Assembly (NCBI GenBank): GCA_047495785.1
Contig: JBLDXI010000024.1
Coordinates: forward strand, 3,410,001 to 3,474,000
DNA: 64,000 nt
Direction of reading: 5' to 3'
Origin: Lepidodermella squamata
Taxonomy: Eukaryota > Animalia > Gastrotricha
Shown: positions 5,984-48,993 of the stretch, piece by piece
Numbering within the stretch: the stretch's first letter is position 1
Layout of the letters: each line of letters begins with the position of its first letter
Made by a program: the position numbers and the translations under genes
The notes under the pieces: generated by a model
The model's database searches: none
What the model saw: only the letters and a program-made list of their open reading frames with translations
What the model was told of the DNA's origin: nothing

Positions 5984-8900
5984 GTATACCGGGAACAACA
6001 CCTGCACGTATGCTTGATTTGAAAATAATCTCCATGTATTTATGGGCAATCTTGCAGCGACGTGCAGCTTAGATTGCAAGAATGGAGGTACCTGTATAGC
6101 GACAGATACTTGCAAATGCACATCGGGATGGACCGGCACCGACTGCAGCACTCGTAATTCTTAACGTAGTGGATAAAGGTTGGAGCTATTAGTGAAAATT
6201 GACAGCTATTTGCTCGTCATCTTGTCAAAATGGCGGAACTTGCTCGGCCCCAAACACTTGCAAATGTGCTAGCGGTTATACTGGCAATACATGTGGCACA
6301 CGTTAGCTTCATGCGATGTTGTCAGAGAATATCTCTTCTCTTTGCTGTTTTGTTAATTTCTTTTATAGCTTTTTGCTCTCCCGGCTGCCAGAACGGTGGA
6401 ACTTGCTTCGCGCCAGACAATTGCGTTTGTCCCACTGGGTACAACGGAACTTCTTGCCAATCGGGTAAAACAGTCAACATTTTTCAGCAGAATTAATGGT
6501 TAATTTATTCATGATACTCTCCTCAGCTATCTGCTCGCAAGCATGTGCCAACGGCGGGAGTTGCACTAGGCCAAACGTCTGCACTTGCACCCCAAGTTGG
6601 AACGGAACAACGTGTTCAATTCGTAAGCCTGCAAACTTTTTCATACCTCCTCTCTTGAAATTCTTGTTATTATGCCAGCTGTATGCGATCCGTCGTGTCA
6701 AAATGGGGGCAACTGTACGAATCCGAACAACTGCAGTTGCCCGCCTGGTTATACTGGCAGAAGCTGCCAATCAGGTAGGGTTTTGCTGGCTTAGAATTTG
6801 GCATCATCATCAACTGGTTCCTTGAAGCTATTTGCAATCCATCTTGTCAAAATCTTGGTATATGCTCCCGCCCCAATGTTTGCCTTTGCACCTCACTTTG
6901 GAATGACTCGACGTGTTCAACACGTAAGGCTTTGAATCTTTTGCAAATCGTTTTTATTTAGGACTACAACTACAGCTGTCTGTAGCCCCAGCTGCAATAA
7001 TGGGGGAAATTGCACAAGTGTATCTCCAAGTTCCAACAAATGTCGCTGTGCAGCAGGTTGGACTGGGCCTAGCTGTTCTACTCGTAGGATAAAATATTCA
7101 ATGAACGATTCTTATAATCTTACGATTTTCCCTTAATAGCAATCTGCTCCACTGGGTGCGCTCACGGTGGCACATGTATCGCGCCAGAAATTTGCAGATG
7201 CAACTATGGATGGAAAGGGACGAATTGTTCGTTACCAGCTTGCCCATCTTTAAATGAATGCAACGGCCACGGGACGTGCATTGCTCTCAACAACTGTACT
7301 TGTGATTTCTTGTGGAAAGGAGACAGCTGTGACCAATGTTAGTTTGACAGATTTTATTGCAGTATGGACTAAAAAATTACGGTCTTTTTCCCAGGGTATT
7401 GCCAAGACGGGTGGTGTTACAACGGAGGAAACTGCAGTGGGCCTAAGTAACGTTTATTTAAGTCATGTTACGTTGCAGCTTTTTTTTGTTATGTTTGGAA
7501 TGTTACAGCCAATGCCGCTGCCCACCGATTTGGCGTGGACCTCATTGCGAGCAACGTAAGATAATACCATAATAGCAATTCGGAAAATTCTGCTGTATTT
7601 CCCATAGCTGTGTGCACTCCTGAATGTTCCAACGGTATCCATTCAACATAATTTTGTGATTTTTATTAAGAAATATTTAATTAAGGCGGCTGGTGCTTGT
7701 GGGCTGGCGGTTTCAAGTAATGCCCTATGATATAGCGAGGCCTTCTATTTCCATCCATTTTTTCTAGGTGCCATTGTCCTTCAGGATGGACTGGGAACGA
7801 CTGTACCATACGTTTGTAACGATTTATGTATGTTCGGTTGTTAATTTGGGCTCCTTATTTAGCGGACCCTGCTTCTTATTCCGGACATCTAACTTTTACG
7901 AGTCAGAACGCTAAAACATGGGCCACGGAAGATGTTTACAAAAAATTTGTCCTTGACCCAAGCGCCTATCCTCAAGGATTTACATCGGCACGTAAGTCGA
8001 GTTTCCAGTTTGTTTCCCCTTTTGCCTATTCAATTTTCTCTGGCCTCTTTTGCAGCAACTAGTGTCGACAATTGCTGCCCCTGTGGATCCTTCTTACAGG
8101 ACAATAATTGCTATTTTGTTGTAAATCCACACACGTCTTGGAATCTTGGAGATTATATGACACAGCCGCATTACGCAATGGCAACTTGTACCCATGCTGG
8201 AGCAACTTTAGCGACATTCGAAACGGGGGATTCACAGGCGAAAATGGCGAATTTGGTCAAATGGCTTGCAACGGAGCTGAATATTCAGTTGGACAAAAAA
8301 CCAGTTGATCAAAGTCTTAACGAGTGGAATGATATCTGCCTAATTATTGGAGGATACCGAGATCATACTCACAACAAATGGTACTGGCAGACTTATCCAC
8401 CAGTTGAAATCGACTCCAGTTTGTGGTATCGAGGCGAACCGCGTTACGATATTGAATTCTTATGCATGATACCGGTAAGGAGGAAATGTCACATCGGACT
8501 TTTTGACCATTTCCTATACTAGCATAAGAAAAGACCTCTCTTGAGGACTTTCTATTACTGGTGGGGTGCTCAGCCGGCAGTCTGCATGATCCGCAACCCG
8601 TGTTCTAGCATGCCAGTTTGCAAGCCTGGCGTTGCGAAGAATAAAATCGAGAACATGCGAATCATGGATCGCTGCTACTCAACTGGAGTATCCACAGGCG
8701 GAGATTGGGGTAACGATTACGTAGACCGGCTGAAGGCTGAACAAATCTGCCAGGCAAAGAATGGATTCTTAGCGACAATCAGACAGCAATTTGAGCCGTA
8801 CTATTGGTCATGGGCTTTGGACGCCTGGTACAAAGCTGAGGACAGCACGGTAAATAGCTTGTGGCGTATTTGGAATTACCAAGGTTGGATCGGCTACAAT

Positions 8901-17900: not shown

Positions 17901-20900
17901 AAGCCCAGCTGACAATCAAACTTACTACGCATACTACAGAGACTTTTACCTGTCAAATGAAGCCGATGGATATACGTTGATTTTGGAAAATTACGACACA
18001 GCGACTAATGCCTGGGAAGCTGCTGGAAATGGATTTTCCGGCATGTCTTATCAGCCTTTTGCAACTTATGATAAAGGTGTCATGTCTAGTTGCATCACGG
18101 CTAATAATCTGAGCGCTTGGTGGTTCAATAGTGACTGCAAATCAAGTCAAAGCAATCTCAACGGCTTCTACAAAGACACTCGAAATTTAGCCGGTGTCAT
18201 GTGGAAGACTTTGAACGGCGCGAAGGATGGGAAAACGTCTGTCGCTGCGGTGAAAATTGCAATTCGACGAAGAAATCGTCTTCAAGATTGCGCTGCAACA
18301 GGTAACAACGGAACTAGTACCTTATACTTGCCCGATGGGACCAGTTTCCAGGCCGTCTGCGATTTGACGACAAATTACTCTTCTCCCAATATTCAAAATC
18401 GGGGAACAGCTTGGACAATAATTCAGAAGCGAGATGATGGGAAAACTGATTTCTGGCGAGGCTGGAATGACTACAAACAAGGCTTTTCCGATCCTGATAA
18501 AGGTCTCAACGGCGATTACTGGCTTGGTCTTGATATAATAAGCAGGATGACTATGGCTGCTCCGTATTCCCTTCTCGTTCACTGCAAAAGTCCGATAGAT
18601 TCTCAGTGGAAATATGCATACTACGACGACTTCAAAGTTTTCCCCGAGAGTCAGAACTATCGGATTCAGTTGAAAGGATTCGACAATGCTACGATATCGC
18701 CAGCCGGGGATTCGATGGGAGCTTGGATGCATAATTACCAGGAGTTCAACACACCTGATAAAGGAGCATTTAAAGACTGCATGGTACAGAATGATAGAAA
18801 ACGATTTGGTGCATGGTGGTATCCACCTCTGGGTGATGGCGTAATTTGGCCTGATGGACAACCAGCGAGTTGTCGGATTCTGTCGAATTTGAACTCCCCA
18901 AACTGGGACAGTCGAGATATGGGTTACGGCTTGAACTGGATGACTCATACTGGCTTAGACAAGTCATGCTCAGCTACTAGACTAGCTATCAAACAAAAAG
19001 GAAACGATGTCTTATATCGACCCAGGGCTAGCACATCTCTTATGTGCAGCAGCAGAAAGATGACGTACAAGCATACGTGCAACCATGCTTACAGGGCAGT
19101 ATCTGGCGATCCTATCCGGCTAATGCTTCCAGATCGAAGTGGGGTATATACTTCGGAAGATTTGGTGTGCAAGCGTAAGTTTGCGATTCGTTACATCTAA
19201 CTGGCTTTCATTCTGTGGTTTATTTTTAAAGCATACGCCGAGCCACAGGACTGCACTTGGAAGCAATCAAAAGCCAATGGAACGAGCAAATTCATTTCGG
19301 ATACATATAGCGATTTAGTGGCAGCTGATAGCAATGGAAACCCTGTTACTTTCACGGGATATTGCGACATGGAAACATTCGGCGGAGGCTGGACCGTCAT
19401 ACAGCGTAGAATTGATGAAAGCACGACGTTCATGTTGGATTTTCCAAGCTATGAAACCTCATTCGGTGCACCTACGAAGAATTTTTGGCTCGGCAATAAG
19501 TTGATCGAAGGCCTAACAGCCTCCGCGAATTTTGAACTTCTGGTCGAGATTCGTGCCGATAACGAGTATGCTTTCGCTTACTACAAACTCTTCTACACAG
19601 AGAGCGATGCCTACGTATTGACCGTCGACAAATATCAAGACTGCTCTACAGCGGGAGATTCGTTAACATCGTTGAAGGGCAACTTTTTCACGTTCGATCT
19701 GTGCGGTGGTTGGTGGTTCAACACTCCATCTGTCTGCTTAGGCAAGAATAACAACGATCGTACATCGAACTTGAACGCTCCAATTGGGAAACAATCCCCT
19801 GATAACTCTGGAATGTTCTGGTACACCTATAAAAACAGTTTCAGTCCCAATCTCATCTGGTCGTCGATGAAAGTTCGCCGTTCTGGAACGCGAGGCCGCT
19901 ACGTTAAAGCAGCGAATTTTAAATGTGACCAAGGCACGTCCGCAGCAATGACAAAGGCCACTGCAGACCTGTGTCAATCAGCATGTACGAGTTACTCAGG
20001 TTTCACCTGCCGAACCGCTGTTTTCACGCCTAAGGGATCTAATGCTGGGGATTGTGTCGTTCGTAATGCGACTTGCGATCCTGGCAGTGGTAAAGTAGAA
20101 GCGGGTACCGATACGTATTTCCGTATGGACGACTGTGATTACTTTCCTGGGGCTTGCGGACCCCCTCCAACAATGGTGGGAGCCACTCAAGAGATTATAT
20201 CACCATCTTACAACTCAAAGATGATCGTCAACTACACTTGCGTAATGGGATTCTCAAACTCAAAATGGAACGGCGATAACACTAATTTGACTTGCGAACC
20301 ATCAAAAGGCATATGGGTCGGAGACTGGTTAGATTGTCGAACATTGTGTGGCATGTTTCCAGATATGTCTCAATTCAACGTTGATAGACTGCCGCAAATC
20401 GACATTGATGGCGGAACAATGACGCTCTACTATCAATGTAGCAACGATTACACTATGGTTTCAACCGGTTCACCCACCAGACTGTGTGCCCCACCCTATG
20501 GCGAGTGGACCGGAGATAAAATTGTTTGCAAATCAACGCGATGCCAGCTACCACCGGTCGTCGACAATTCTTGGAATAACTACACAATTCCCGACCCTAT
20601 CCCATACGAAAACCAAACCAAGTGGAAGACTACCTGGCTATACGGTTGCAATCGGGGTTATGTCTTCAAAGACCCTGATGGTTACGTCAAGAACAAAACG
20701 ATATATTGCGGCGATCAGCAGGAATGGGAACCGAAAACACCTGGAGCGTGTGTTCAGTTCAACTGTGACAATCCTCCGCAGTTTGACGTGAAAGTCTCCG
20801 GACCTGTGCCTATGACAGCTAACGCGCTCTACGAATTCGGCACCACCTTCACCTACGAATGTTTCAGCGATAAAACGTTAGATCCACTGGATTGGGATAG

Positions 20901-21133
20901 TCAGATAAATATTTCGTGCATCGGTGAGTCGTCAGTGTATTCTTGAATGTTTTACATTAAACTCTGCTTGAATCTACAGCCAATAAAACTTGGGGCGTGC
21001 TAAACTATACCGGATCGCCAAAAACATGGCTACCTTCGATTTGCATAGGTAAGATTAGGATATGGGTGAGTTTACGGCCGTATAATAACGTCATGAGTAA
21101 GATCACCACTGGGGCGGTAGCTTCTCACCTTGA
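5984..21133 (+). CDS. Giant mosaic lectin, constant region, copy 1: 11 EGF, ~10 C-type lectin, 3 FA58C, 5 fibrinogen-related, PAN/apple-like, 4 sushi domains
   Basis: I traced about 44 short GT-AG introns and the frame stayed open from the 24-nt microexon (5984-6007) to exon 20980-21048. Motifs include CQNGGTC EGF repeats, WIGL/WxWxDG C-type lectin motifs, [24 protein letters not shown] fibrinogen motifs and C..C..W..C sushi repeats. The terminal exon 21102-21133 ([10 protein letters not shown]) is tentative. Confidence 0.9.
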
Positions 21134-21153
21134 GTTGCGCTTCTTTATGTTTT

Positions 21154-21225
21154 GGGGAGCTGAGCGGTTGACCTCCTCGTGGTGCTTCCTGGAGTCACCT
21201 TGCGGGGTGATACTAACGAACCGCT
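21154..21225 (+). ncRNA. HDV/CPEB3-like self-cleaving ribozyme (copy 1)
   Basis: P1 GGGGAGC/GCUUCCU with G1-U wobble; P2 AGCGGUUG/C(G)AACCGCU; P3 ACC/GGU; L3 UCCUCGU; P1.1 CC/GG; P4 GUCACCU...GGGUGAU; J4/2 CUAA with the putative catalytic C at 21213. Confidence 0.85.
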
Positions 21226-21369
21226 ACTGTTGTATGGATGTTGTAGGTTTCTATAGTAATACACTTGAACTCAAAGTATTGTTCAACATGCTAGAGAAAT
21301 AGCAGGAATGCTGAGAATATTTTGACGCAACGAAGAGTTTGCTAGTTGAGGCTTTCGCCTGCTTTTATG

Positions 21370-30620: not shown

Positions 30621-30834
30621 GTCTGTTTTCAAAATCTTAAATACAATCTTAACACATATTCGAATCGTGAACTGATGTTGTGGGACCACACATCACCCGT
30701 TAGAAGGTTGACCATGGGTTAATAAAATATAACATTATTATTAATATCCACATCTTTTCAAAAACACTTCAATTGTACACTATTACTTTCGTATCTTTTA
30801 ATAACATTCGTTTTTCCATTTAAATTCCCTACAG

Positions 30835-33800
30835 GTACACCGATAACAACACCTGCACGTATGCTTGAATATAAAATAATTTTCGAGCATTTATGAGCTT
30901 TCTTGCAGCGACCTGCACCTTAAATTGCAAAAATGGAGGTACCTGTATAGCGACAGATACTTGCAGATGCACATCGGGATGGACCGGCACAGACTGCAGC
31001 GCTGGTAAGTCTTATCGTAGTGGAAAAAGTTTCGAGCTATTAGTGAAAATTGACAGCTATTTGCTCTTCATCTTGTCAAAATGGCGGAACTTGTTCGGCC
31101 CCGAACACTTGCACATGTGCAAGTGGGTATAATGGCACTCTATGTGGCACACGTAAGCTTCAATTTCATGCGATATTATCATGCGAGTTAATATGTTTTC
31201 TTTGCGGTTCTATATTTATAGCGGTTTGCTCTCCAAGCTGTCAGAACGGTGGAACTTGTTCCTCGCCCAACAATTGCGTTTGCGCCTCTGGGTACAATGG
31301 AACTTCCTGTCAATTGGGTAAACAATTCTACATTTCACAAAAATAGATAATTCATTAAAATAATTTCCCTCAGCTATTTGCTCGCAAGCATGTTTGAATG
31401 GTGGGAGTTGTACTAGGCCAAACGTCTGCACCTGCACTCCAAGTTGGAATGGAACAACGTGTTCAATCCGTAAATCAGCCAGTTCAGTAATTCAACTCTT
31501 GATGTTATCTATATCTCAGCCGTCTGCAATCCATCGTGTCAAAATGGGGGCACCTGTTCGAACCCGAACAGCTGCACTTGCCCGGCTGGTTATACTGGCA
31601 ACAGCTGCCAAAATGGTAGGAGTTTGCTGGCTTAGAACTTAAGTCATCATCAACTAGTTCCTTGAAGCAATTTGCAATCCATCTTGTCAAAATCTTGGCA
31701 CATGCTCCCGTCCCAATGTCTGCACATGCACTTCGCTTTGGAATGACTCGACGTGTTCAACACGTAAGGCTTTGAATCGTTTGGCAACAAGCTAATTAAG
31801 CAAATATTTCACGACTACAGCTGTCTGTAACCCCAGCTGCAATAATGGGGGAAATTGCACAAATGTATCTCCAACTTCCAATAAATGTCGATGTGCAGCA
31901 GGTTGGACTGGGCCCACTTGTTCAACCCGTAGGCTATTGATTAAGGTTAGTAAAGTTAGAAAATCTAGTTTTTTTCCTTTCAAGCAATATGCTCCACTGG
32001 TTGCGCTCACGGTGGCACATGTATCGCGCCAGACCTGTGTAAGTGCAACTATGGATGGAAAGGAGCAAATTGTTCGTTGCCAGCCTGCCCAACTTTAAAT
32101 GAATGCAACGGTCACGGGACATGCATTGCTCTCAACAACTGTACTTGTGACTTCTTATGGAAAGGAGACAGCTGTGACCAATGTTATTTTGACAGATTTT
32201 ATTGCAGTATGGACTGAAAAAATTACGGTCTTTTTCCCAGGGTACTGCCAAGACGGGTGGTGTTACAACGGAGGAAACTGCAGTGGACCTAAGTAACGTT
32301 TATTTTAGTTATGCAGTGTTGCAACTGTTTCAAATTTTACAGCCAGTGCCGCTGCCCACCGATTTGGCGTGGACCCCATTGCGAGCAACGTAAGATAATA
32401 CCATAATAGCAATTCGGAAAATTCTGCTGCATTTCCCATAGCTGTGTGCACTCCTGAATGTTCCAACGGTATCCATTTCATAGCCTCGTGTGATTTTTAT
32501 TAAGAAATATTTAATTAAGGCGGCTGGTGCTTGTGGGCTGGCGGTTTCAAGTAATGCCCTTCAATATTGTGAGAACTTCCATTTTTATCCATCTTTTCTA
32601 GGTGCCATTGTCCTTCAGGATGGACTGGGAACGACTGTACAATCCGTTTGTAACGATTTACGTATGTTTCGGTGGTTAATTTGGGCTCCTTATTTAGCGG
32701 ACCCTGCTTCTTATGCCGGACATCTAACTTTCACGAGTCAGAACGCTAAAACATGGGCTACGGAAGATGTTTACAAAAAATTTGTCCTTGACCCAAGCGC
32801 CTATCCTCAAGGATTTACATCGGCACGTAAGTCAAGTTTCCAGTTTGTTTCCCCTTTTGCCTATTCAATTTTCTCTGGCCTCTTTTGCAGCAACTAGTGT
32901 CGACAATTGCTGCCCCTGTGGATCCTTTTTTCAGGATAACAATTGCTATTTTGTTGTAAATCCTCACACGTCGTGGAATCTGGGAGAATACATGACACAG
33001 CCGCATTACGCAATGGCAACTTGTACCCATGCCGGAGCAACTTTAGCGACATTCGAAACTGGCGATTCACAGGCGAAAATGGCGAATCTAGTCAAATGGT
33101 TAGCAACGGAGCTGAATATTCAATTGGACAAAAAGCCAGTTGATCAGAGTTTGAACGAGTGGAACGATATCTGCTTAATTATTGGAGGATACCGAGATCA
33201 TACTCACAACACATGGTACTGGCAGACTTATCCACCAGTTGAAATCGACGCGAGTTTGTGGTATCGAGGCGAACCGCGTTACGATATTGAATTCTTATGC
33301 ATGATACCGGTAAGGAGGAAATGTCACATTCGAAGTGGAATTTTTGACCATTTCCTATACTAGCACAAGAAAAGACCTCTCTTGAGGACTTTCTATTACT
33401 GGTGGGGTGCTCAGCCGGCTGTCTGCATGATCCGCAATCCGTGTTCAAGCATGCCAGTTTGCAAGCCAGGCGTTGCGAAGAATAAAATCGAGAACATGCG
33501 AATCATGGATCGCTGCTACTCAACTGGAGTATCCACAGGCGGAGATTGGGGTAACGATTACGTAGACCGGCTGAAGGCTGAACAAATCTGTCAGGCAAAG
33601 AATGGATTCTTAGCGACAATCAGACAGCAATTTGAGCCGTACTATTGGTCATGGGCTTTGGACGCCTGGTACAATTCAGAGGACAACACAGTAAACAGCT
33701 TGTGGCGTATTTGGACGTACCAGGGTTGGATTGGCTACAATCATTTGGGCTGTGAGTCTTTCTGTTCTCAGAGTTCTCCCATATAAACGTTGTGCTTTTA

Positions 33801-36800
33801 TTAGCGGACTATTATTGGGATTCTATTAATAAAAACTTGGCAAGCCCCTATCATGTCAACTGGAAACTCGGCAGTGGCCAGGAGCCAAATGACCAGTCGG
33901 CTAGTTACTGCTCGATGATGAAAGCTGATGGGTGGTACGACGAGCTATGTTCAAACAACGCAATAGTAATAATTGCTCACATCGATGACATCTTTCTTTA
34001 ACGCAATATCTCTGTCATGCAGAGCATCGCTTGTGAAGGTGGAGTGGGCGTGGTGACATTACCATCCACTGATAGCGCTTGCGTTCCCCAGTGTCCAATC
34101 ACACGTGAGTTTGCCCTTTATTCGATCCAAGTGATATAGTCCAAGAATTTATTCGAGCAGCGACCTGTCCACAAGGCTACTTCTACTCTTCATGCTACGA
34201 CTCTTGCTACAAAATCGTCAAGTTAGTGAAAGTCTTCATGTTTTACTCACAGGCTCATCACTCCAATTTCTTAGTGACTCCAAAAGCTACCTGGACGCCG
34301 CGGGAGAATGCGTAAGAAACATGAAAGTTTTACTGATGCATACATTTTTCATTTCAATTACAGGCTCTTCAAGGCGCCACTCTTCTAAATACTAATACAA
34401 GTGGTGAATTCTATTACATTACCGGATTGTTGCGCAAAGATAAAGATTGGTTCCTTGGCCTTGGCGATTGGGCTCGTCGTTCTCGAGGCGATCTTTCAAT
34501 TGGCATTAAGTCATACACTGGTGATGCGGATGGGACATGGAGATGGCAAGATGATAGCATCACGGATACGATATCTTATGATACCTTATCTGGTGCCTTT
34601 TCAAAAGCACCATCTCCATATGACTTCTTGATCTGGGAAAAGCAGCCAACGCCAGCTTCAGACGGCATCAGTGCGCCGTATATTAGTTTTTTGAGGTATG
34701 ACCCGAGCGGAAAGAGATGGTACATTCCTGTGAGCAATGCTAACAACTTCAACTACCAAGCCGCTTATGTCTGCGAATACAATGCGGCCTGCTATGTGTG
34801 CCCTCCCGGGTGGTTCAAATTTGGGGTTCATTGCTTCGAGTCAGTGCACAACGATGGTGATGGGGCTTATGCTGATAAGGAAGTTGCCTGCAAGAATCAA
34901 GACTCAAGGGCATGGATTTGGTATCCTAGAAGCCAGATGACGACAATGTTTGTTAGGCTTCTAATTGGTCAGATGAACTCGTTCGGAGTGGGTACAAATG
35001 TGTGGATCGGTCTGGAGAAAAACTCTGACGGAAACTGGGTTTGGTCAGACGGAGTTGCCGCTTCCTCATCCCATTCATTTGACATAACATCCACGGCACT
35101 TACCGCCGCTAATGACGCGTTTTTTGTTACTGGCGTCAACAAATTGAGCAGCATAACTACTGTGACTGGCCAGCCCGAGTCGATGTGGAAACCAGCGGTA
35201 AGCACTTCAGCCTACCGAGCTGTTTGCCAGATGCCAGCTATTTACGGCTGGCAGCCAACTTGTCAATCTGCCTGCCCGGCGAAACGTAACTAGATTTACC
35301 ATCATAAATATGTCAACTTACTACCATGCGCTCTATGTTTAGCGACTTGTCCAAGTGGCTACACTTATTCGGCGTGTTTTGACTCATGCTACAAAGTGTC
35401 TACGTAAGTTCTTCGGACAGCGGGTGCTTAGAGATTTCTTCAACTATTCAGATTACAGGAATGCAGTTCAGTACTTTGATGCTTTAGAAGATTGCGTGAG
35501 TATATCATAAGACGCTAAATGGGCAAGAACTATAGCCAGTTTATTAATTTCCGTAGCTTGCCTCGGGTGCGTCATTGGTGAACTTCAATTCGTTGGATGA
35601 ATATCAGTTCATTATCGGTGGCGGGGTTAGTGGACTAGATACCAGCCAATCTTATTTTATTGGCCTGCAAGACTGGGTTCGACGGGGTCGCCGAATCCTT
35701 TACCCTGCGCCTAAGGCATTTTCCACTTATAACGGCGATCCGGATGGGAAGTGGTACTGGTCAGATGGCACTGGTCCGATTGTTAACACAGACATTGCCG
35801 ATGCTCCTTATTCAGCTTCTCCTAGCCCATGGAGTTACTTGATTTGGCAAAAACGGCCGATTTCCTACTACGATGGTTCTAATAATTTCGTGGCATACCT
35901 GTCCTATAACAAATCGCGATCGCAATGGTACTTACCCGTCGATAACAACCGCTTCAGTACTTCGGCTCGTTACATCTGCGAGGTCAACAACGCTTGCTGG
36001 ATGTGCCCGAGTTGGTGGTATAAGTGGGGCAAGATGTGCTATTTGAATACTAATTGGGGTACTACAAAGATAGACAATGCTAGAAAATGGTGTTTTGGTG
36101 AGAACACCGGTGGTGTCGCAATGATAGCCCCGAAAACTGAGCCTGCATTGATGTGGCTGCGTGTTGCCGGTAATCACAACAATATTTTCGGTTTCGGGGA
36201 CACTTTCGTCGGCCTGTACCTGGCCCCGGGCGCCACCAGTTGGATTTGGGGCGATAACTCGTCCTTGGCAGCCACTGATGCGTTCGAAAGCGCGCCTGCT
36301 GATACGCTTGAAGGCGGTGAAACTAACCTCGTATTTAAGCCAGCCGCAGATACTAATTTAAATAACGCGCTTGACCAGCTTGATACTCAGTGGAAGACTC
36401 GAGATGACAGCCAGATGGGATACGTTCTATGCCAACGAGCCGCTGTTTACGCCAACGGAGCAACGCCTGCACCACCAGCACCGACTGCGGCGCCTGGATC
36501 GCCAACTACCACGCCAGTACCAGAATGTGTTAACGTAAGAATTCCAACCATAATTTGGAAATTTCCTGCAATCTTGATCGCAGGATGGTTGTTGCAGATG
36601 CCCCCTCGTTAGATACTCTGACCCTTCGACTCAAACAGATAACTGCTACTTATTTTCGAATTACACGTGAGTGACTATTGCAATGAATCGAAATAGGAAA
36701 TCGAAATCGAAATAGGGCAACTTGGGCAGATGCAAGTTGGGCATGCACTCAAATGGGAGGCTACCTGGCCGTGCCCGACACCATGTCAGAAATGCAATTC

Positions 36801-39800
36801 CTTCTCAACCATCCGAAAATGGTTATGCCATATTACTGGACAGCTCTGTCTTTGAGTAATGACTTTTAATCAACAAATTGTTGCAAAATGATTTCTTTCT
36901 TATTCAGACTCCTACGGCATTTGGGCTTGGCCCAATTGGCCTGGTGGTGTTACACAAGCGTTGAGCCGTGAGTTTTCCTCAAGTTTCATAACAATTATTG
37001 ATGATGAGCTAAAAGGTTTCGTCACGGGTGACACTGCTTTGAAAACGAGTTCGGACTGCTACGCCGGGCTACTGTCAAGCAACGATAACTTAATCATTCC
37101 ATTCTGCAACAGCTCAAGGACGGTTCAGTTGACGAACGCAACAGTTGGAAACGTCACATCTTTCGATACTACAGCCAAATACCGATTCATCTGCGAGATT
37201 GCTCATTCGCCTTCTAATTGTTTAGGTTTGAGTGTTTTTCCAAATTCGAAATGAATTTATTAGATTTTTCGCAGGATGCAAAGATCCGGATTATTCAGCC
37301 AATTTAACCTCACTCAGCGACGGTTTGCGTATTGCTCCTGACAAATGTGTTTGGCTATTCACCCAGAATGCAGACCGGAATACTAATCTAGACAAATGCA
37401 AGGCGGCAGGCATGAAACCCCTGACTCTCCTTCAACGCTATGAAACGCAAGTTGTTAGCCGAGCAATGACTGAACTGCAGAGGGAAGGATTTTGGCTTGA
37501 CATTGTCCTTCGAAATAAAAGTAGAAATTCTAAAATCTGGTTGTAAGCATGCAAAATTTGTTTCTTCTTGTAGCGGATTACGAATGGGAGGGTGAGCCCA
37601 CAACCTGGGAGACCACTCCATATAACAGAGTCGCTGGGTTGCCATGGACGAATAATTGGTATCAACCCTGTTCGAAGCTGAACAATGACATGTTCATATA
37701 CACTCGGAACTGTCAAGATGGATCTGTTCCCGTCTGCACCGTACCATCTGCAGCAACTTGTGCTGACCTTTGCCCGGAAGGTTTCACATCAGTAGGAGCA
37801 ACTTGCTACAAGCTCATAACGTTAGCTTGAATACTAACATATTTCATTCTAAAACATCGCATTTTCAGGGCTGTAACGGCGAAAAATCCATTTGATGCTC
37901 GAAATTATTGTTATCAAAATCATAATACTTACAATTTGGTCTCCATTACTGATGCGAAAATTTTCACCCAAGTCGTCAGTTTTATTCGCTCTTCGAGCTT
38001 AGTGGCAACGGGCGCGGCGATTTGGATTGGCCTCGATAACAGTTTGCGCATAGGTCGGACACCAAACTCGCTAATGCAGAGCACCCAGATCGGAGATCCA
38101 GACTCCAGTATGCTATCGAACGTAGATCAACGTCTATATTCAATTCGTAATACATTTAGATTGGGATCTCGATAACAATGGGGATTTTACCTTGGCAAAT
38201 AGCTCGGATTTTTGGGCTGGCGGCTTCCCGCAAAACAATCACATTTGGGCTTATCTTGTTTGGGACGACACCACAGTTAGGGTGAAATCTACTGTAAGTA
38301 CGACATCAATTGACGGATATTTCATTTGTGAACGGCCGCAACCCTGTTTGGAGTGTGATCTCGGATGGGTTCGTATTCTTACGTTGCTATCTGTTGAACC
38401 TTCATTTCAAATTGAATAGAGTTTCTTTAATGGCCGGTGTTACAAAAGAGTCGCAGGCGTTGCAGGCGCGAAATTTCGAAGCGCAAGACATCAATGCGAA
38501 TTTATGAACGCTTATCAAGCTTCCATCAATTACCCGCTTGAAGGCGTTCTTCTCAGGCTGATGACTGACCCGACAGTTCGCATTACTGTCGGAATGTATA
38601 TGCTAATGCAGTACAACTATCCGCAATACGAGGACTACTGGGAATGGGAGGATGGAACGCGTCTCAATAGTTCACTATTCAACAATTGGCCGAGTGAGCA
38701 ACCTGATAGATCCAACGTAAATCCTCTTCAGATGCATTCAAATAATGTATACTAACGAATCAATTGTTGACAGGATGTCGAAATAGTCGGAGGCTATAGG
38801 TTGAACGGCGGCTTTGCTTGGAATGATGCAAAATTGGATTATGGCGATTGGGGCCTATGTGAAAAAGCTGCAATGCCTCCGACGATCAAATGCACAAAAG
38901 GTACAAGAAATTTTAAATCCTTCAGTATAAAGAAGCTCCCTTCTATTGCAGTTGGGTCTTCGGCTTCGAAATGTGGAGACAGTGTAGCTACTAACATATT
39001 TGTGAGTTCTAGCGGCTTCTCTGCAAGTTCAACATTCGTAAATGGTACAGTATCGTATCCACCATCGAATCTCGCCCTTGGGAACAATTTCTGGTGTCCA
39101 AGCCTCACTCCAGCAATAACGCCAGCAAACCCTGCTTGGATTAGATTACGATTCACTGACGGGCCGATATTTGTTCGTTCGATTGGTGTGGAGGGCCCTT
39201 CCGTAGGTGTGGGCCGAGTGCTGGCGTACATAGTCAGCTACAAACCACAACTTACGTCGAGGGAACTGCACGTTTTTACGCACAAATCAACGGCATTCTG
39301 GATGAAAAAGGCGCCGATCATTTTCGCCGGCCCTGGTGCGGAAACAGTTCGAAACGCGCAAGAAATTTGCCCAAGAATTCAAGCTGCGGAGCTAACAATA
39401 TGGGTTCTTAGCTATACAGTTATGCCGTTCTTCAAGGCAGATATCAAAGGATGCCTCATGACATCTGGCGGTTTGATCTGTTAACATTCAAGATTATTAT
39501 TTAACCTCGGTTATCTCAGGTACTTCACTGTGCGACTGTTGGAATGAGATTTATGACGGGAGCACTTATTTCCCATATTTGAGCCACACAGTCAGCGCAG
39601 ATTCTGGCGATGCTTCTCAGGCTCAAGGTCTGGCCCAAACCTCTGGCTCGGACAATATTCCCGGCTGGACTCCGACAACCTTCGGAGATGGCCGTAACTG
39701 GTGGAAAATCGAGTTTAGTATTCTCAAAATCGTGAGTGGCCTTGTCATGACTGGCAGCAACGATAACAGCAAAAAGGATCAGTGGATCAAATCTTACTAC

Positions 39801-42800
39801 GTCATGTGGTCTCACACAGGCTACGAATACACATTCAACTACTATTCAGCTCTCGATGGCTCTGCGAGGCTGTTCATGGGACCCATGAATGCCTCCGCTC
39901 CAACTCAGCAGTCATTCTGCCCGCCGATGAAGCTGAAAGCTATGAAGATTATTCCAGTGGATTATAACAATAAGCCAACCATGGTAGTTGACATTTTCGG
40001 CTGCTCAGCCAAGGGAAAACGATGTAAGTAAATTCTAATATCCGGGTTTCGATTCATCGCCTCCTCTCCCAGGCTTCGATTGCTGCGATATCATTGGCTT
40101 GTGTACCTGTAACTGTCCTGTTGGGTAATATAAAATTAGCTTTTATAACAAATTCAATGTGACACAAATGCTTAAAGATGGTCTGGCACTTCGTGCTCGT
40201 CATTGGCTGCGGGGAAAACTTATTACATTGACGCTCAGCCGCCAGGTAAATCTTATTGATCTGTGAAAATTTAGAATGTATCGATTTTCTTATAGTCTGT
40301 GAAAACGACTTACTCAGCGAGGCATTCTCTAAATGGGGTGGATCTGTGAGCTCTAGCACCAGTGGCGATTACGGGGGCTTTGATGGTGACGAACTAGCTG
40401 CCTTCTTCACAACGGCATCAATCTTGAAAGACGGTCGGCAGTTTTTCCAGATAAATCTTGGGAAAGCTACTTCCATTTCAATGATAAGCTTGAAAGGCCG
40501 GAACAAAGATTCTCTGTCCCGTTATGTCACTTCATATTCATTATGGTTTTTGGTCGAGAACACCAACGATCGACTTTTCTACCCATTGTTGAACTCTCAA
40601 ACTTCGTCAACATCCGGCATTATGATAATACCCGGTGCAAGAGACCATTTAGCATACACACCGTACAAGTTCTGTCCGAGCATCAGAACGAAAATTCTAC
40701 GGCTAACTCCTGTTACCTTTGTCGGAAAACCGGAGATGTATGTAAAGGTGTATGGCTGCCCTACTCATGCGCCCTGTTCGACCTGTTGCACCAACGAAAA
40801 TGGTTGCCAATGTTTATGCCCAGTTGGGTATTCTACGGTATTTGGGGTTGGCTATCAAGCTAATCCGTGGCCTCATTGTGGTAAACTATTGAAATTCCTA
40901 ATTAAAGCGATTTTCGAAGTTTAAAATTTAGATCAATGGACAATGCCCCAAGTGGACTGTGAGGACCATGCCATGAGACAAGCCTCAAAGGCTGATGGAG
41001 TCTACAACATATTCCCTCCGGGTTCAAAAACCGCAATATCGGTTTATTGCGACATGACGACTTACGGTGGTGGCTGGACTGTTATTCAGAGTCGGGTCGA
41101 TTACACTCAAAGTTTCTACCAGAATTGGGCTGATTATCGAGACGGCTTCGGGCAACTCACCAGCAGTCATTGGTTGGGTAATCGATATATCAATGCGATT
41201 ACGCAGAATATGAATCGCTACGACTTGATCATTGTCATTACATCAATCGATGACATCGAGGTGATGCATTATTACAAAGATGTTTATATCGAGCCTGAAA
41301 CCGGTGGGTTTACCATTCGTATTTCTGGTTACGACTGCTCTTGGTCAACTGCCGGAGATTCTTTCTCGATGGCGGACGATCAGCGATTTTATACTTATGA
41401 CAATGACACCGGTAGTTCCGGAAGTTTTGGTTGTGCGAAAAACGCCTACGGAGGTTGGTGGTATAAGCCGGCTGGTTCGGTAACAGGATGCCACAGGGCG
41501 AACTTGAATGGTAACGGCAACGGAAAATCTGAAGGGTCAATGATAACCTGGGCGACGTGGCGTGGATACTGGGAAAGTATGAAGACTACAAAAATGATGA
41601 TCAGACGATCTCCTCTACCTTTTGTTACGCAACGTGAGTTGGCATGTACAGTTTCAGAATTTATTCGCAAATTTACTATCGCCAAACAGAGCTTCGCCCT
41701 CAATTCCCTTACCCGAGCGACTGCTTAGACATTCGAGAAGCTAATCCAAGTGCTCCAAGTTCAACTTACACAATATACACGGTCACCGGAGAAAGTGTGT
41801 CAGTTTACTGTGAAATGAACGCCCTTGAGGGCGGTTGGACTGTAATTCAGCGCCGATACAACGACCCCACGGTAAAATTTGATCAAAACTTCACGACTTA
41901 TGCCCGAGGCTTTGGCTCGACGATGGGCGCTCATTACTTGGGTAACAAGTGGATATGGGCGATTACGAACATCGAACTGACAAGAATTCCATACGAACTT
42001 GCTGTTGTTCTCGAGGACTCAAATGGAGAAAAACGGACCTCTCATTACGATGCCTTCTGGCTGTACAGTAACACGAGCTATGAAATAATTGTCTACGGCT
42101 ACAATTCCGATGGGAGCACGATCGATGTAGGCGGTGATGCGCTGAGCGTACATAACTGGCAGCCTTTCCGAACCTTTGATCAAGCTGTCTCGGGCTGTTC
42201 TGGTTCATATACCACTGGATGGTGGTGGCATAGCGGTTATTGGGATAATGGAAAATGTTGCGAGAGCAATCTAAATGGAGTCTATGATGTCAATTCTTGG
42301 GAGGGCGGTGTCTACTGGGCGCCATGGAAAGGTCGGTATGAAAGTCTGAAATCTGCAACCATGATGATCAGAAGGCGTGGGCCGAAGCCGATAGACTGCG
42401 TGGATATGCTGGGCCAAGGCATGACCGATGATGGGGTTTACTTCATTTATCCGTTCGGCATGAAACCCATTCAGGTCTATTGCGATATGGCTACTTACTA
42501 CAACTCGCCAAGAGCTGAGGGAGGTATGGGCTGGATTCTCCTCCAGCGCAGAACGAATTTCGATGTTCCTTTCAATCGAAGCTGGGCTGATTATAAGAAC
42601 GGCTTCTCAGGCCCAGATGGCCTCAAGGGGGACTTCTGGCTTGGATTGGAAACAGTTTACCAGCTGACTAAATCAACAACCTATTCGATGCTGATTTCAG
42701 TCAAAAGCCCAGCTGACAATCAAACTTACTACGCCTACTACAGAGACTTTTACCTGTCAAATGAAGCCGATGGATATACGTTAATTTTGGAAAATTACGA

Positions 42801-45800
42801 CACAGCGACTAATGCCTGGGAAGCTGCTGGAAATGGATTTTCCGGCATGGCTTATCAGCCGTTTGCAACTTATGATAAAGGTGTCATGTCTAGTTGCATC
42901 ACGGCTAATAATCTGAGCGCTTGGTGGTTCAATAGTGACTGCAAATCAAGTCAAAGCAATCTGAACGGCTTCTACAAAGATACTCGAAGTTTAGCCGGTG
43001 TAATGTGGAAGACTTTGAACGGCGCGAAGGATGGGAAAACGTCTGTCGCTGCGGTGAAAATTGCAATACGACGAAGAAATCGCCTTCAAGACTGCGCTTT
43101 TACCGGTAACAGCGGAATCAACACCTTATACTTGCCCGATGGGACCAGTTTCAAAGCCGTCTGTGATTTGACGACAAATTACTCTTCTCCCAATATTCAA
43201 AATCGTGGAACGGCTTGGACAATAATTCAGAAGCGAGATGATGGAAACACGGATTTCTGGAGAGGTTGGAATGACTACAAACAAGGCTTTTCCGATCCTG
43301 ATAAAGGTCTCAATGGTGATTACTGGCTTGGCCTCGACACAATAAGCAGGATGACTATGGCTGCTCCGTATTCCCTTCTCGTTCACTGCAAAAGTCCGAT
43401 AGATTCTCAGTGGAAATATGCATACTACGACGACTTCAAAGTTTTCCCCGAGAGTCAGAACTATCGGATTCAGTTGAAAGGATTCGACAATGCTACGATA
43501 TCACCAGCCGGGGATTCTATGGGAGCTTGGATGCATAATTACCAGGAATTCAACACACCTGATAAAGGGGCTTTCAAAGACTGCATGGTACAGAATGATA
43601 GAAAACGATTTGGTGCATGGTGGTATCCACCTCTGGGTGATGGCGTAATTTGGCCTGATGGACAACCAGCGAGTTGTCGGATTCTGTCGAATTTGAACTC
43701 CCCAAACTGGGACAGTCGAGATATGGGTTACGGCTTGAACTGGATGACTCACACTGGCTTAGACAAGTCATGCTCAGCTACTAGACTGGCTATCAAACAA
43801 AAAGGAAACGATGTCTTATATCGACCCAGGGCTAGTACAACGACAATGTGCAGCAGCAGGAAGATGACGTACAAGCATACGTGCAGCCATGCTTACAGGG
43901 CAGTATCTGGCGATCCTATCCGACTAATGCTTCCAGATCGAAGTGGGGTATATACTTCGGAAGATTTGGTGTGCAAGCGTAAGTTTGCGATTCGTTACAT
44001 CTAACTGGCTTTCATTCTGTGGTTTATTTTTAAAGCATACGCCGAGCCACAGGACTGCACTTGGAAGCAATCAAAAGCCAATGGAACGAGCAAATTCATT
44101 TCGGATACATATAGCGATTTAGTGTCAGCTGATAGCAATGGAAACCCTGTTACTTTCACGGGATATTGCGACATGGAAACATTCGGTGGAGGCTGGACTG
44201 TAATACAGCGTAGAATTGATGAGAGCACAACATTCATGTTGGATTTTCCAAGCTATGAAACCTCGTTCGGTGCACCTACGAAGAATTTTTGGCTCGGCAA
44301 TAAGTTGATCGAAGGCCTAACAGCCTCCGCGAATTTTGAACTTCTGGTCGAGATTCGTGCCGATAACGAGTATGCTTTTGCTTACTACAAACTCTTCTAC
44401 ACAGAGAGTGATGCCTACGTATTGACCGTCGACAAATATCAAGACTGCTCTACAGCGGGAGATTCGTTAACATCGTTGAAGGGCAACTTTTTCACGTTCG
44501 ATCTGTGCGGTGGTTGGTGGTTCAACACTCCATCTGTGTGCTTAGGCAAGAATAATAACGATCGTACATCGAACTTGAATGCTCCGATCGGGAAACAATC
44601 CCCTGATAACTCTGGAATGTTCTGGTACACCTATAAAAACAGTTTCAGTCCCAATCTCATCTGGTCGTCGATGAAAGTTCGCCGTTCTGGAACGCGAGGC
44701 CGCTACGTTAAAGCAGCGAATTTTAAATGTGACCAAGGCACGTCCGCAGCAATGACAAAGGCCACTGCAGACCTGTGTCAATCAGCATGTACGAGTTACT
44801 CAGGTTTCACCTGCCGAACCGCTGTTTTCACGCCTAAGGGATCTAATGCTGGGGATTGTGTCGTTCGTAATGCGACTTGCGATCCTGGCAGTGGAAAAGT
44901 AGAAGCGGGTACCGATACGTATTTCCGTATGGACGACTGTGATTACTTTCCTGGGGCTTGCGGACCCCCTCCAACGATGGTGGGAGCCACTCAAGAGATT
45001 ATATCACCATCTTACAACTCAAAGTTGATCGTCAACTACACCTGCGTAATGGGATTCTCAAACTCAAAATGGAACGGCGATAACACTAATTTGACTTGCG
45101 AACCATCAAAAGGCATTTGGGTCGGAGACTGGTTAGATTGTCGAACATTGTGTGGCATGTTTCCAGATATGTCTCAATTCAACGTTGATAGACTGCCGCA
45201 AATCGACATCGATGGCGGAACAATGACGCTCTACTATCAATGTAGCAACGATTACACTATGGTTTCAACCGGTTCACCCACTAGACTGTGCGCTCCACCT
45301 TATGGCGAATGGACCGGAGATAAAATTGTTTGCAAATCAACGCGATGCCAGCTACCACCGGTCGTCGACAATTCTTGGAATAACTACACAATTCCCGACC
45401 CTATTCCATACGAAAACCAAACCAAGTGGAAGACTACCTGGCTATACGGTTGCAATCGGGGTTATGTCTTCAAAGACCCTGATGGTTACGTCAAGAACAA
45501 AACGATATATTGCGGCGATCAGCAGGAATGGGAACCGAAAACACCTGGAGCTTGTGTTCAGTTCAACTGTGACAATCCTCCGCAGTTTGACGTGAAAGTC
45601 TCCGGACCTGTGCCTATGACAGCTAACGCGCTCTACGAATTCGGCACCACCTTCACCTACGAATGTTTCAGCGATAAAACGTTAGACCCACTGGATTGGG
45701 ATAGCCAGATCAATATATCGTGCATCGGTGAGTCGTCTGCGTATTCGTGAATATTTTATATTAAATTATGCTCAACATTGCAGCCAATAAAACTTGGGGC

Positions 45801-45942
45801 GTGCTAAACTACACCGGGTGGTCAAAGACATGGCTGCCTTCGATTTGCATAGGTAAGACTAGGAAAGGAAAATGTGGCAATGAGGTTAATGGGGTGAGTT
45901 TACGCCTGAGAGCACCACTGGGGCGGTAGCTTCTCACCTTGA
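30835..45942 (+). CDS. Giant mosaic lectin, constant region, copy 2 (same exon structure and domain order as copy 1)
   Basis: Collinear with 5984-21133 at an offset of about 24.8 kb. The long ORFs (786 aa, 542 aa) are intact and most differences in the 3' half are synonymous. The terminal exon 45911-45942 ([10 protein letters not shown]) is tentative. Confidence 0.9.
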
Positions 45943-45962
45943 GTTGCGCTTCCTTTTGTTTT

Positions 45963-46034
45963 GGGAAGCTGAGCGGTTGACCTCCTCGCGGTGCTTCCTG
46001 GAGTCACCTTGCAAGGTGATACCAACAAACCGCT
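45963..46034 (+). ncRNA. HDV/CPEB3-like self-cleaving ribozyme (copy 2)
   Basis: P1 GGGAAGC/GCUUCCU; P2 AGCGGUUG/C(A)AACCGCU; P3 ACC/GGU; L3 UCCUCGC (as in genomic HDV); P1.1 CC/GG; P4 UCACCUUGCAAGGUGA; J4/2 CCAA with the putative catalytic C at 46022. Confidence 0.85.
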
Positions 46035-46503
46035 ACTTCTGTTCCTTCCTACTACCTCACTAGTCTCGAATTCGCTTTTTCTTTTCACACGAGTATTTTT
46101 CCCAAAAATAAGTGCAATCGCGGTGCCCCACACCAACAATTTCACCAAAGAAGCGTCGAAATATCTGATATGTCAAGTTCGGCGATTTTGGTTACCGTCT
46201 CAGTTGTTGATTAGATTTCTCCGAGGTTATGCTTCCCGATTAGCCACAGTTGCACTCAAAAAGGCATGCCCTGAGGCGGCAAGAAACAGCAAGCAGTTTC
46301 GACCATTCGAAGCAAAATTTTCATTTTGTCAAGGTAAATGGTACTATTTCAGGAATAACGGCAAAATTCAAAAATGTTTTATTAGTAAATTGCAGAAATA
46401 TAGCACAATTCTTGGCGTAGAAACGTAAATATCTAGCAAGATGATGTAACAGACCAGAAACAAAATGTAAAGGTTCAAAAGTATATTCAAAATTGAGCAC
46501 AGT

Positions 46504-48993
46504 TCATTGACCGAGTTTCTTATTGACTGAAACATCATTCAGATCTGCCAGAAGCGCATCGACTGAAGCCGAGGCCGATGTGGAATCGATCGGAAGCTCA
46601 TCTTGGTGATCATCTTCCTCCGGCATTTCTTCAACTTCGCGTTGTGGTTTCGGAACTATTAACGGAGCTTTGACTGCTGGCGGACGATGAGCAAAAGGTT
46701 TCGGCGGGGTAAACACCTTCGAATTTTCACCGAATGCCTGGTTCGTAGATTTCCCTCCCAGCTGTTCGAAAGTTAGGCTGTCTCGATTGAACTTCAAATA
46801 AATCTTTCCTAGCTCGCCATCGAAACGGTTTTTCGTTATAGCAACGCATTTAGAGTTTGGATTGAACGATGGCTGTTGATTAGGTGGCTGGCCGTAAGTG
46901 TTATTCCGAAATGAAGGAAACGAATTATCGCCGCCGTGAAATCCACCGCTGTTTTGAGGTGGACTGGGCGAAGCTGAGGGTTGCAAAATCATGACATTAT
47001 CAGCTTCTTGAACAGCTTTCACGCCGCCGAAAATGCTTGAATTAGTCAAAGGCACGCCTTCTGCCTCTTTTCTCGGGTGAATAACTAGGGTGACATGGCA
47101 CTGCTGCTGAGTTGCAAATCTCCTCAAGGCCGCAATAATTTGATCCTGAAAAATTAAAGAAAGTCAAATTAATTTGAAAATTATGAAGTAATTCAACCTG
47201 TTTCTGAAATCGATCAATCAAAGCGCGATCGTCCGAAATATCCATCATAAACTGCAAATTATCGATAACGACGTGCATGATGTCATGGACGTAGACTGCA
47301 TGGGTCATTGCTTCAACAACTTTCTTCAACGACTCAGAACCTACAAAATTGAATGGTTTGGTCGTTATAAATTTCAATTAATATTCCTTACCATGAAATG
47401 TAAGAAAATGGATTGGAAGATGCTCAAACTGGTTACTCAAAAGACTGAAATCGTCTTTTAAATGAGCGCTGAAAAAATAATAATGATATTTTCTCAAAAA
47501 TTAGCACAAAGTAGGTACCTTGGAGCAAGTTTCCGACCGGCGAATTGAGTCAGCATCAATTTGCAAAGCCGAACATTGCTGATTTCGAAACTACCCCATA
47601 AGGTAGCCACGCCTTGCATGGCCAAATCGAGCGAATAATCAGAAATGAACGTCGTTTTTCCCGCGCCAGTCGGGCCTGTAAAGATCGTCAATTCACCTCG
47701 TCGATGTCCCTAAAAATTCAGTCAAATTTCATCGACAGCGTGAAAATCAGTGATAATTTACCTTCAAGAGTTCATTCAATCGGGGAAATTTGCGCCATCT
47801 AACACCGGCAACTTGTTCAGACTGGGCTAATTCAGCGTAAACCTCTTGTTTCAGCTGGCTGAATGATACTATCGCTTTATGAGCGGCCGGATAAGCACTT
47901 GATATGACGTCTTTCAAATCGACGCCGCGGGCTAGCGCATCGTGAGCACCGGCGTACTGATCACTGGGCCTGACTAGGAAACATCGCTTTTCGCCTAGTT
48001 TTCGGGAGAATTGCTTAGCAGCTTGCCAAACAGTTAATTCACTTCCAAGCCACAGTGTAATTTTACGGAATGGCTCCAACATTGGGAGCAAATATTGAGG
48101 TAGGGACTGGGTTCCGCATGGTAAAGCCAAAACTGCAACCGACGATGTTGGGGAATGAGAAATCGACTGTAAATTACAGATTAATAATAAAAAATATTAA
48201 GAAAAACAACACCTCATACCTGATAAATTGCCATGGCATCGACTTCCGAACTGGTTAAGATAACCTCAGTCGTTTTCTTCGATAGAAGTTGCCATCCAAA
48301 TAAACCAAACAACTGCTTATTGCAACGCTGACGCATCCTAGCAGGTTGTTCATCAGAAGCCGTAACTGTTCGCGTTCCCCGAAGACGGAAATTGGCATTG
48401 CTGGAAGGACCATTAAATGGGTAAGTGATAGAATCAAGTTTATCACTGGTATAGCAGTCATAGCTGGCAAAAGTTGTTTGAAGTATCCTTTTGTCGATGT
48501 GGAGTTTTTCCTTCAGGCTCGCGAAGTCTTCAGCAGAAAGGAGAGCAATTCGCTTCAGCCCAACGAGTAGATCATCTGCACTTGACGAAGAAGCATCACC
48601 GTCATCTTGTCTCGAAACGACGCGCTGGCAAATTTTCGAAGGTGCTTTGCCGTGAGAAATAGAATTCAGCAAGTTCTGAAAAGCGGCATAGTCGCCCGTG
48701 TGGAGGCAATGGTTGCAAACAAATGCTCCAGTGTGAGCATTCACAAAAAGTTTGCTGTTGTCATCCACAGCTTTGCTTTGGGACTTTGGTTTAGGAACCG
48801 ATGGACATACAAAAGACAAACAAGCATGACCATGCTCGCTGGCTATTTTCTTGTCATCTAAGAATTTTCGGATTTCTTCTGACGTCACCGAGGTAACTGC
48901 GCCAGTATTAATAGTAGAGAACTTTCTTCCCTGTGAACCTATCAATCGCCCATGGCACGAGGTCTTGAGTGCCTTCAAGCTCAGGCGTATCAT
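46504..48993 (-). CDS. TWNK: Twinkle mitochondrial DNA helicase (multi-exon)
   Basis: Basic mitochondrial-targeting-like N-terminus, Cys-rich N-terminal domain, Walker [54 protein letters not shown] and KNRFDG. Confidence 0.95.

Follow-up and report, generated by a model that had tools for sequence, protein, structure and literature searches.

To our knowledge, very few self-cleaving ribozymes outside viruses, satellites and jumping elements are clearly tied to a host gene, and the usual examples of those that are remain CPEB3 and Clec2. The sequence described here, a 72-nt stretch from the genome of Lepidodermella squamata that lies behind the last coding exon of a lectin gene, has features in common with each of these two ribozymes, with the HDV class of ribozymes and with the ribozymes that stand at the head of non-LTR retrotransposons. 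Like the mammalian intronic CPEB3 ribozyme (PMC10919898, PMC6765202), it would be a host-gene ribozyme that is under purifying selection and comes after a splice donor, and its cleavage could compete with RNA processing. However, CPEB3 is a single-copy ribozyme in a long intron between two conserved exons, whereas the lectin ribozyme occurs in 17 paralogues and no conserved exon follows it. With the discontinuous hammerhead in the 3′ UTR of rodent Clec2 genes (PMC6765202) it shares the position of a self-cleaving ribozyme in the 3′ region of lectin-type genes, between the coding end and the message end. The Clec2 hammerhead, though, is split by hundreds of nucleotides and lies between a defined stop codon and a defined poly(A) signal, whereas the lectin ribozyme is without a consistent poly(A) signal and its coding exon ends in a splice donor. 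The ribozyme heads of non-LTR retrotransposons (R2, L1Tc, RTE and baggins; PMC6765202, PMC3185411) have the same fold class and, as would be the case here, their cleavage frees the downstream part. In retroelement ribozymes, however, conservation is found downstream and variability upstream (PMC6765202), which is the reverse of what is found in the lectin family, and no reverse-transcriptase context was seen around the lectin ribozymes.

In structure, the closest relatives are HDV and the HDV-like ribozymes (RF00094, RF01787), with which the lectin ribozyme shares a 7-bp P1 that starts from a G.U pair at the cleavage site, a 3-bp P3 and a double pseudoknot closed by P2, as well as an L3 (UCCUCGC) identical to that of genomic HDV, a P1.1 of two G-C pairs and the J4/2 pattern C-N-R-A. 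It differs in scoring below both Rfam thresholds and in having a short P4 (7 bp) and a one-base bulge in P2. The predicted ribozyme (copy 2 of two) occupies 45963-46034 (+) of the window, by which we mean the whole 64,000-nt stretch of DNA that was analysed, and is numbered from G1 (45963) to U72 (46034), the predicted cleavage site lying 5′ of G1, between 45962 and 45963 (+). As modelled, this stretch is a real HDV-like fold in which all structural hallmarks of the class are present, namely a nested double pseudoknot with P1, P1.1, P2, P3 and P4 in which all 27 pairs can form. P1 (45963-45969 with 45993-45999; positions 1-7 with 31-37) has 7 bp and begins with the wobble pair G1.U37; P2 (45972-45979 with 46026-46034; positions 10-17 with 64 and 66-72) has 8 bp, with A65 (46027) bulged; and P3 (45980-45982 with 45990-45992; positions 18-20 with 28-30) has 3 bp. 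The 7-nt loop L3 (45983-45989; positions 21-27) provides C22 and C23 for the 2-bp P1.1 (45984-45985 with 46000-46001), where they pair with G39 and G38, respectively. P4 (46003-46020; positions 41-47 with 52-58) has 7 bp and a 4-nt loop, and J4/2 (46021-46025; positions 59-63) contains the candidate catalytic residue C60 (46022).

An Rfam search of the locus gave no match at gathering score. In local searches HDV_ribozyme (RF00094) reached 24.3 bits against a threshold of 50, aligned over the whole length, and drz-agam-1 (RF01787) reached 18.2 bits against a threshold of 37, aligned over P2-P3-P4. Because of these sub-threshold scores the ribozyme is filed under the structural HDV-like class and in neither Rfam family. 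Minimum-free-energy (MFE) folding, which cannot represent a pseudoknot, gave weak z-scores of -2.1 and -0.8. A covariance model (R2) built solely from eight distant paralogues on other contigs detected exactly two sites in the 64-kb window, 45963-46034 with 79.1 bits (E 3.6e-19) and the copy in the upstream gene (copy 1) with 75.9 bits (E ~1e-18), and these scores exclude a chance origin of the two sites.

A blastn search of the animal's own genome yielded five ribozyme copies. In these five closest copies 135 of 135 helix cells pair, with two-sided changes at 5 pairs, and a second covariance model (R1) was built from them in which P2, P3 and P4 were entered as pairs and P1 and P1.1 were absent. 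The genome search with R1, in which 150 candidates were scored, gave at least 20 strong matches on eight contigs; among the matches listed, 17 are intact and 3 are decayed. In a model-guided alignment of these 20 copies, the three decayed ones included, to which P1 and P1.1 were added, 95.4% of 503 helix cells pair, versus 32-49% in controls in which the pairing partners were slid by 1-3 columns. Two-sided changes are found in 18 of the 27 pairs (75 cells), a level reached by 0 of 500 shuffles. Covariation is seen at two pairs of P1 (G-C/A-U), a helix that was absent from the search model, and at one pair of P3 (A-U/G-C), and every pair of P2 and P4 varies. P3 is ACC/GGU throughout except for GCC/GGC in three members, L3 follows the pattern UCC-N-CG-Y, and all intact copies have G1.U37 and a P1 of 7 bp, the copy L020, which the model had misaligned, having been checked by eye. 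Invariant in 16 intact copies are G1-G3, A5, C7, C19-C23, C25, G26, G28, G29, G31, U33, C35-U37, G38, G39, C60 and A63, the positions that make up the predicted catalytic core.

The three decayed copies have a deletion of 3-4 nt in L3 and AAUAA instead of ACUAA in J4/2, which places an A at the position of C60. All three keep part of the leader and have no Sushi exon of the kind that precedes the intact copies. One of them is L015 (G000:C24:3717765-3717844, -), and the other two (L024/L025; G000:C54:2166768-2166848, -, and 2168719-2168799, +) are an identical inverted pair 2 kb apart. From their sequences, all three look like decayed fragments of lectin gene ends. An initial sequence-only reading of the window had proposed that, if the RNA structure were not under selection, broken helices or loss of the J4/2 C would be seen at neutral rates among homologues; this pattern is confined to the three detached copies. 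Averaged over all 136 pairs, identity falls from 0.70 in the ribozyme to 0.59 in the exon and 0.56 in the last 55 nt of the leader, and the spacer (0.50) and the downstream sequence (0.49) are at the random level given by the shuffled baseline (0.49). The ribozyme is better conserved than the adjoining coding exon (0.70 versus 0.59), in a comparison among paralogues of one genome, where gene conversion could inflate similarity within subgroups. The proposal of the sequence-only reading that purifying selection acts on the HDV-like RNA structure is correct, as judged from this family-wide sequence evidence; the comparison of two copies from which it was drawn barely carries it.

The same ribozyme core was found in one scan on 25 metagenome contigs. 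As orthologues these were rejected, because 0 of the 25 carry the Sushi exon, and they are taken to be other HDV-like ribozymes. Two of the contigs carry three such ribozymes each, with the same P3/L3/P1 core on one strand at a spacing of 420-1130 nt (L067, at 648-726, 1290-1366 and 1710-1792; L054, at 1606-1686, 2733-2813 and 3559-3633), and these arrays look like tandem ribozyme-headed repeats.

As the sequence-only reading had stated, a paralogue of the ribozyme sits at the same position in the other gene copy of the window, a tandem duplicate ~24.8 kb apart. This is copy 1 (21154-21225, +), which shows 6 differences in 72 nt relative to copy 2; a 36-nt ribozyme probe matches at a single further site of the window, 21154-21189, against a chance expectation of none. 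The differences are at ribozyme positions 4, 27, 51, 52, 61 and 65. Their assignment by that reading proved accurate for position 4, where a G.U pair of P1 becomes A-U, and for positions 27, 61 and 65, which lie in L3, J4/2 and the P2 bulge, respectively. It had also listed two U-G to U-A changes in P4, and one of these is present (pair 47-52, U.G to U-A), but position 51 sits in the 4-nt loop and cannot be counted as part of a P4 pair because pairing of 48 with 51 would leave a 2-nt loop. Of the 6 differences, 4 are among the 18 unpaired nucleotides (binomial P = 0.038) and the two in helices keep pairing, so that their placement offers modest support for selection on the RNA structure. All six sites are variable elsewhere in the family.

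The ribozyme is no island of similarity between the two gene copies because similarity is high all around it. The copies are 89.3% identical overall, with a median of 93% in 60-nt windows, 47% of the 130-nt windows are at least as similar as the leader and ribozyme together, and the 1.1 kb of exon directly upstream is 98-100% identical. This last large exon (44600-45700 versus 19770-20870), which encodes fibrinogen, PAN and Sushi domains, is 98-100% identical in copies that are 89% identical overall, and the near-identical tract suggests a recent gene conversion that did not extend to the terminal exon. The sequence after P2 is indeed unalignable, as had been claimed: the sole blastn HSP between the gene copies (5767-21228 versus 30629-46037) stops at 21228/46037, 3 nt past P2. 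The preceding intron, which had been described as largely unalignable as well, is so only over a spacer of ~55 nt (about 45863-45917, +; 50% identity between the copies, with 15 gap columns), whereas the 52-55 nt before the cleavage site are 93-96% identical.

The host genes are giant lectin genes with EGF, fibrinogen, PAN and Sushi domains, and 17 paralogues carry the ribozyme module. In gene copy 2 the last coding exon (45784-45852, +), assigned from its open reading frame and translation, encodes the second half of a terminal Sushi/CCP domain and ends in phase 1, and the adjoining 542-aa exon contains Sushi (PF00084) and Fibrinogen_C (PF00147) domains. A profile of the terminal exon (consensus N-x-T-W-x-V-x-N/D-Y-x-G ... 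W-x-P-x-x-C) detects 17 places in the 121-Mb genome, and these are exactly the 17 loci with an intact ribozyme. Every intact ribozyme is preceded by the same Sushi exon, with G1 located 105-176 nt after the exon in the 17 genes. A GT stands right after the terminal exon in 17 of 17 paralogues, mostly as GTAAG or GTGAG. In copy 2 this splice-donor-like GTAAG (45853-45857, +) adjoins the exon and has no conserved acceptor or exon further on to pair with. Most paralogues also have a second donor-like motif, which in copy 2 is GGTGAGT at 45893-45899 (+). The unspliced reading frame stops at 45927-45929, ahead of the ribozyme; the conserved donor suggests that splicing may occur. In the downstream 1.5 kb no homology was found in 10 of the 11 paralogue pairs tested, the exception being one recent segmental duplicate, and there is no shared downstream coding sequence save in one recent duplicate pair. 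Since the upstream sequence is conserved and the downstream sequence unrelated, the ribozyme was passed on together with the gene family, and the conserved gene unit ends with it. By this sequence pattern it is a 3′-end module of a host gene and not a transposon head.

Seven of the 17 genes are found in one array on G000:C24 (3.05-3.46 Mb), oriented + + at 3.058 and 3.082 Mb, - - - at 3.340, 3.362 and 3.386 Mb and + + at 3.431 and 3.456 Mb. With the 21-25 kb spacing of this array, what lies ahead of each ribozyme is either the start region or the end of a neighbouring gene. The start exons of the next paralogue lie in the DNA behind copy 1; as to a start-module relic behind copy 2, there is only a weak alignment with three modules behind copy 1.

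Taken from the sequence, the animal probably cuts its lectin messages at their end with this ribozyme. We consider it fairly probable that a functional HDV-like self-cleaving ribozyme closes the 3′-end module of the 17 lectin genes, where catalysis and its consequence for the mRNA are what we infer. The module would be read in the order terminal Sushi exon, unpaired splice donor, non-coding leader of ~105-176 nt and ribozyme. Once the polymerase had passed 46034, the RNA would fold into the double pseudoknot and C60 (46022) would catalyse co-transcriptional scission between 45962 and 45963. The upstream product would be the lectin message, with its U-rich leader ending in a 2′,3′-cyclic phosphate, and the downstream product would be a fragment that starts with the ribozyme and has a 5′-OH end. 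We propose that the cut separates the coding part of the RNA, unpaired donor included, from the transcription that follows, into the start exons of the next paralogue behind copy 1 and into the convergent Twinkle gene behind copy 2, and that it may define or trim the 3′ end of the message. The role would thus be either 3′-end formation or uncoupling from downstream transcription. A message with a cyclic phosphate and without poly(A) is normally unstable and poorly exported, so that the ribozyme could form the 3′ end by itself only with the help of an additional stabiliser.

The DNA behind copy 2 holds a homologue of Twinkle (TWNK) that is convergent to the lectin gene, its last exon being at 46504-47127 (-) with the stop codon at 46504-46506; in phmmer searches against PDB 7t8b, in which the exons were searched separately, the last Twinkle exon gave an E value of 7e-19 and the N-terminal exon one of 2.5e-8. 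The distance between U72 and the minus-strand Twinkle stop codon is 470 nt, which agrees with the sequence-only reading. Its suggestion that copy 2 limits transcriptional overlap with Twinkle is disfavoured on two grounds: the module is present in all 17 genes, some of which face a paralogue in the same orientation, and plus-strand spliced RNA past the ribozyme reaches the 3′ end of Twinkle. The RNA evidence consists of assembled contigs of two runs (X1 and X2), and such contigs show neither transcript ends nor a junction from 45852. The contigs of run X1 behave like RNA from the same species. One X1 contig comprises the Twinkle exons, with four introns of ~51 nt that read CT..AC on the plus strand, and also a GT..AG intron of 52 nt at 46334-46385 (+; joint 46331/46384, cut +2). 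It joins the minus-strand Twinkle exons to this plus-strand junction, the plus RNA covering 46140-46333 and 46386 onward. A GT..AG junction on the plus strand means plus-strand spliced RNA past the ribozyme that overlaps the Twinkle 3′ region, and the candidates for this RNA are a lectin tail, the downstream product of the ribozyme or a transcript from a promoter of its own. A minus-strand AATAAA (46382-46377) is located inside the plus-strand intron 46334-46385. Contig depth is 0-10 over the lectin exons and 0-1.5 over 45743-46136.

This spliced RNA bears on an explanation of the CPEB3 type, in which the donor at 45853 is spliced to a poorly conserved terminal exon beyond the ribozyme and self-cleavage competes with splicing, thereby setting the ratio of C-terminal isoforms or the level of full-length mRNA. 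The donor-like GT after the exon in 17 of 17 genes and the phase 1 end of the exon would be expected on such a scheme, the plus-strand spliced RNA downstream (46140-46333 and from 46386) has a depth similar to that of the lectin exons, and an AG at 46149-46150 would join in frame. However, the RNA contig begins 11 nt before this candidate acceptor, the candidate tail is without membrane-anchor character, and paralogue pairs with exons that are 75-97% identical have no homologous sequence in the downstream 1.5 kb (10 of 11 pairs). We regard a CPEB3-type intronic ribozyme as unlikely.

The sequence that separates the donor from the cleavage site contains the unalignable spacer (45863-45910, +) and ends in a conserved non-coding leader (45911-45962, +), composed of short motifs and a U-rich end that runs up to the cleavage site. 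In copy 2 the motifs are GCACCAC (45912-45918), GCGGTAGCTT (45923-45932) and TTGCGCTTCC (45944-45953), all on the plus strand, and in the family the last 50-80 nt before G1 contain GCACCAC, GCGGTAGCTT, TTGCGCTTC and the U-rich end. The 8 paralogues that are chromosome neighbours retain these motifs, and the rest do so in part. A snoZ101 match on the leader (20 bits versus 44) was dropped, the stretch taking in the non-conserved spacer. One run X2 contig lacks 39 nt of the unconserved spacer that separates donor and leader (45869-45909), which may be a strain difference or the result of cross-mapping between paralogues; for the ribozyme itself, no difference is listed in the X2 contig. GCACCAC, which is present in 11 of the 17 genes, is the exact complement of ribozyme positions 26-32 (the 3′ strands of P3 and P1) in members that have U27. 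In copy 2, GCACCAC at 45912-45918 faces 45988-45994 as the complement of GUGGUGC, the most conserved stretch, and C27 results in one A.C mismatch. GCACCAC is missing from the three paralogues whose P3 is GCC/GGC, which have ACGCCG-like words upstream instead. Inhibitory alternative pairing is known for sequences upstream of the HDV ribozyme, and an alternative, inhibitory pairing of GCACCAC with the lectin ribozyme is possible from the sequence. Duplex energies of the whole leader with the ribozyme do not exceed those of shuffled controls (z -1.9 to +1.3), and no common leader structure was consistent among single-sequence folds.

Such pairing would also have a place in an explanation modelled on the Clec2 hammerhead, for which there is a described precedent (PMC6765202). 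Here a poly(A) site beyond the ribozyme would be removed by cleavage, which would lower or tune lectin output, and the leader might modulate the reaction by alternative pairing. AATAAA or ATTAAA is absent between exon and ribozyme in 16 of the 17 genes and 10 of 17 have a poly(A) hexamer 100-550 nt past the ribozyme, which speaks for this account, and the leader GCACCAC is the exact complement of the 3′ strands of P3 and P1 in 11 of 17 genes. Nevertheless, the remaining 7 of 17 genes, copy 2 included, have no hexamer within 600 nt downstream, the hexamer positions are not conserved among the genes, and the leader-ribozyme duplex energies are not above those of the shuffles. A damper of this kind is a distinctly improbable account of the module.

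It is more doubtful still, to the point of being very improbable, that the conserved block is a coding exon, for example for a hydrophobic anchor, or a structured RNA without catalysis whose likeness to a ribozyme is incidental. The T-rich leader does translate to hydrophobic stretches in several frames, but differences in motif spacing and in ribozyme length do not keep to multiples of three, the frame is not the same in copies 1 and 2, and several members have stops before the leader. A reading of leader and ribozyme as a coding membrane anchor was rejected for the differing frames and for indels that are not multiples of three. The spacing between motifs differs by 0, 2, 3, 11 and 20 nt, and this variability marks the leader as non-coding. 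Against a non-catalytic RNA, the two-sided helix changes together with the invariant catalytic core fit an RNA enzyme. Finally, a neutral relic of a ribozyme-headed retrotransposon that had inserted downstream of the ancestral gene and was then duplicated with it is scarcely credible. HDV-like ribozymes do usually head non-LTR retroelements (PMC6765202), and the same core sequence occurs in 25 metagenome contigs, but the pattern is reversed, with the upstream part conserved and the downstream part unrelated. Moreover, conservation is higher in the ribozyme, whose helices covary, than in the coding exon, copies that have come away from the exon decay, and the Sushi exon is found in no metagenome copy. 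The neutral-relic and coding-exon readings are both contradicted by the data.

The self-cleaving 3′-end module that we favour can be extended to a bolder proposal, which we put forward as a tentative possibility. In this form the mRNA ends of the whole lectin family would be made by the ribozyme and not by cleavage and polyadenylation, the unpaired U1-type donor would suppress the use of poly(A) sites, the U-rich leader would be a protected cyclic-phosphate end, and the GCACCAC switch could tune cleavage. The HDV-like fold class is well known, and its role as a conserved end module in a 17-member host family, behind an unpaired donor, appears to be undescribed: the Lepidodermella squamata genome paper (PMC11660948; 122 Mb, 157 contigs) makes no mention of ribozymes, and a literature search gave no paper that combines the genus name Lepidodermella with 'ribozyme'. 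If the lectin mRNA ends are indeed made by the ribozyme, it would be the first time that a ribozyme is seen to set the message end of a host-gene family. In L. squamata a delta-type ribozyme has been retained as 17 paralogous genes diversified, always behind the last exon and an unpaired donor, and the family thus offers 17 natural replicates, along with 3 decayed controls, for asking what a ribozyme does at the end of a gene. The roles that come into question in this system are the formation of 3′ ends free of poly(A), a safeguard against read-through splicing to the paralogue that follows in tandem, and tuned down-regulation.
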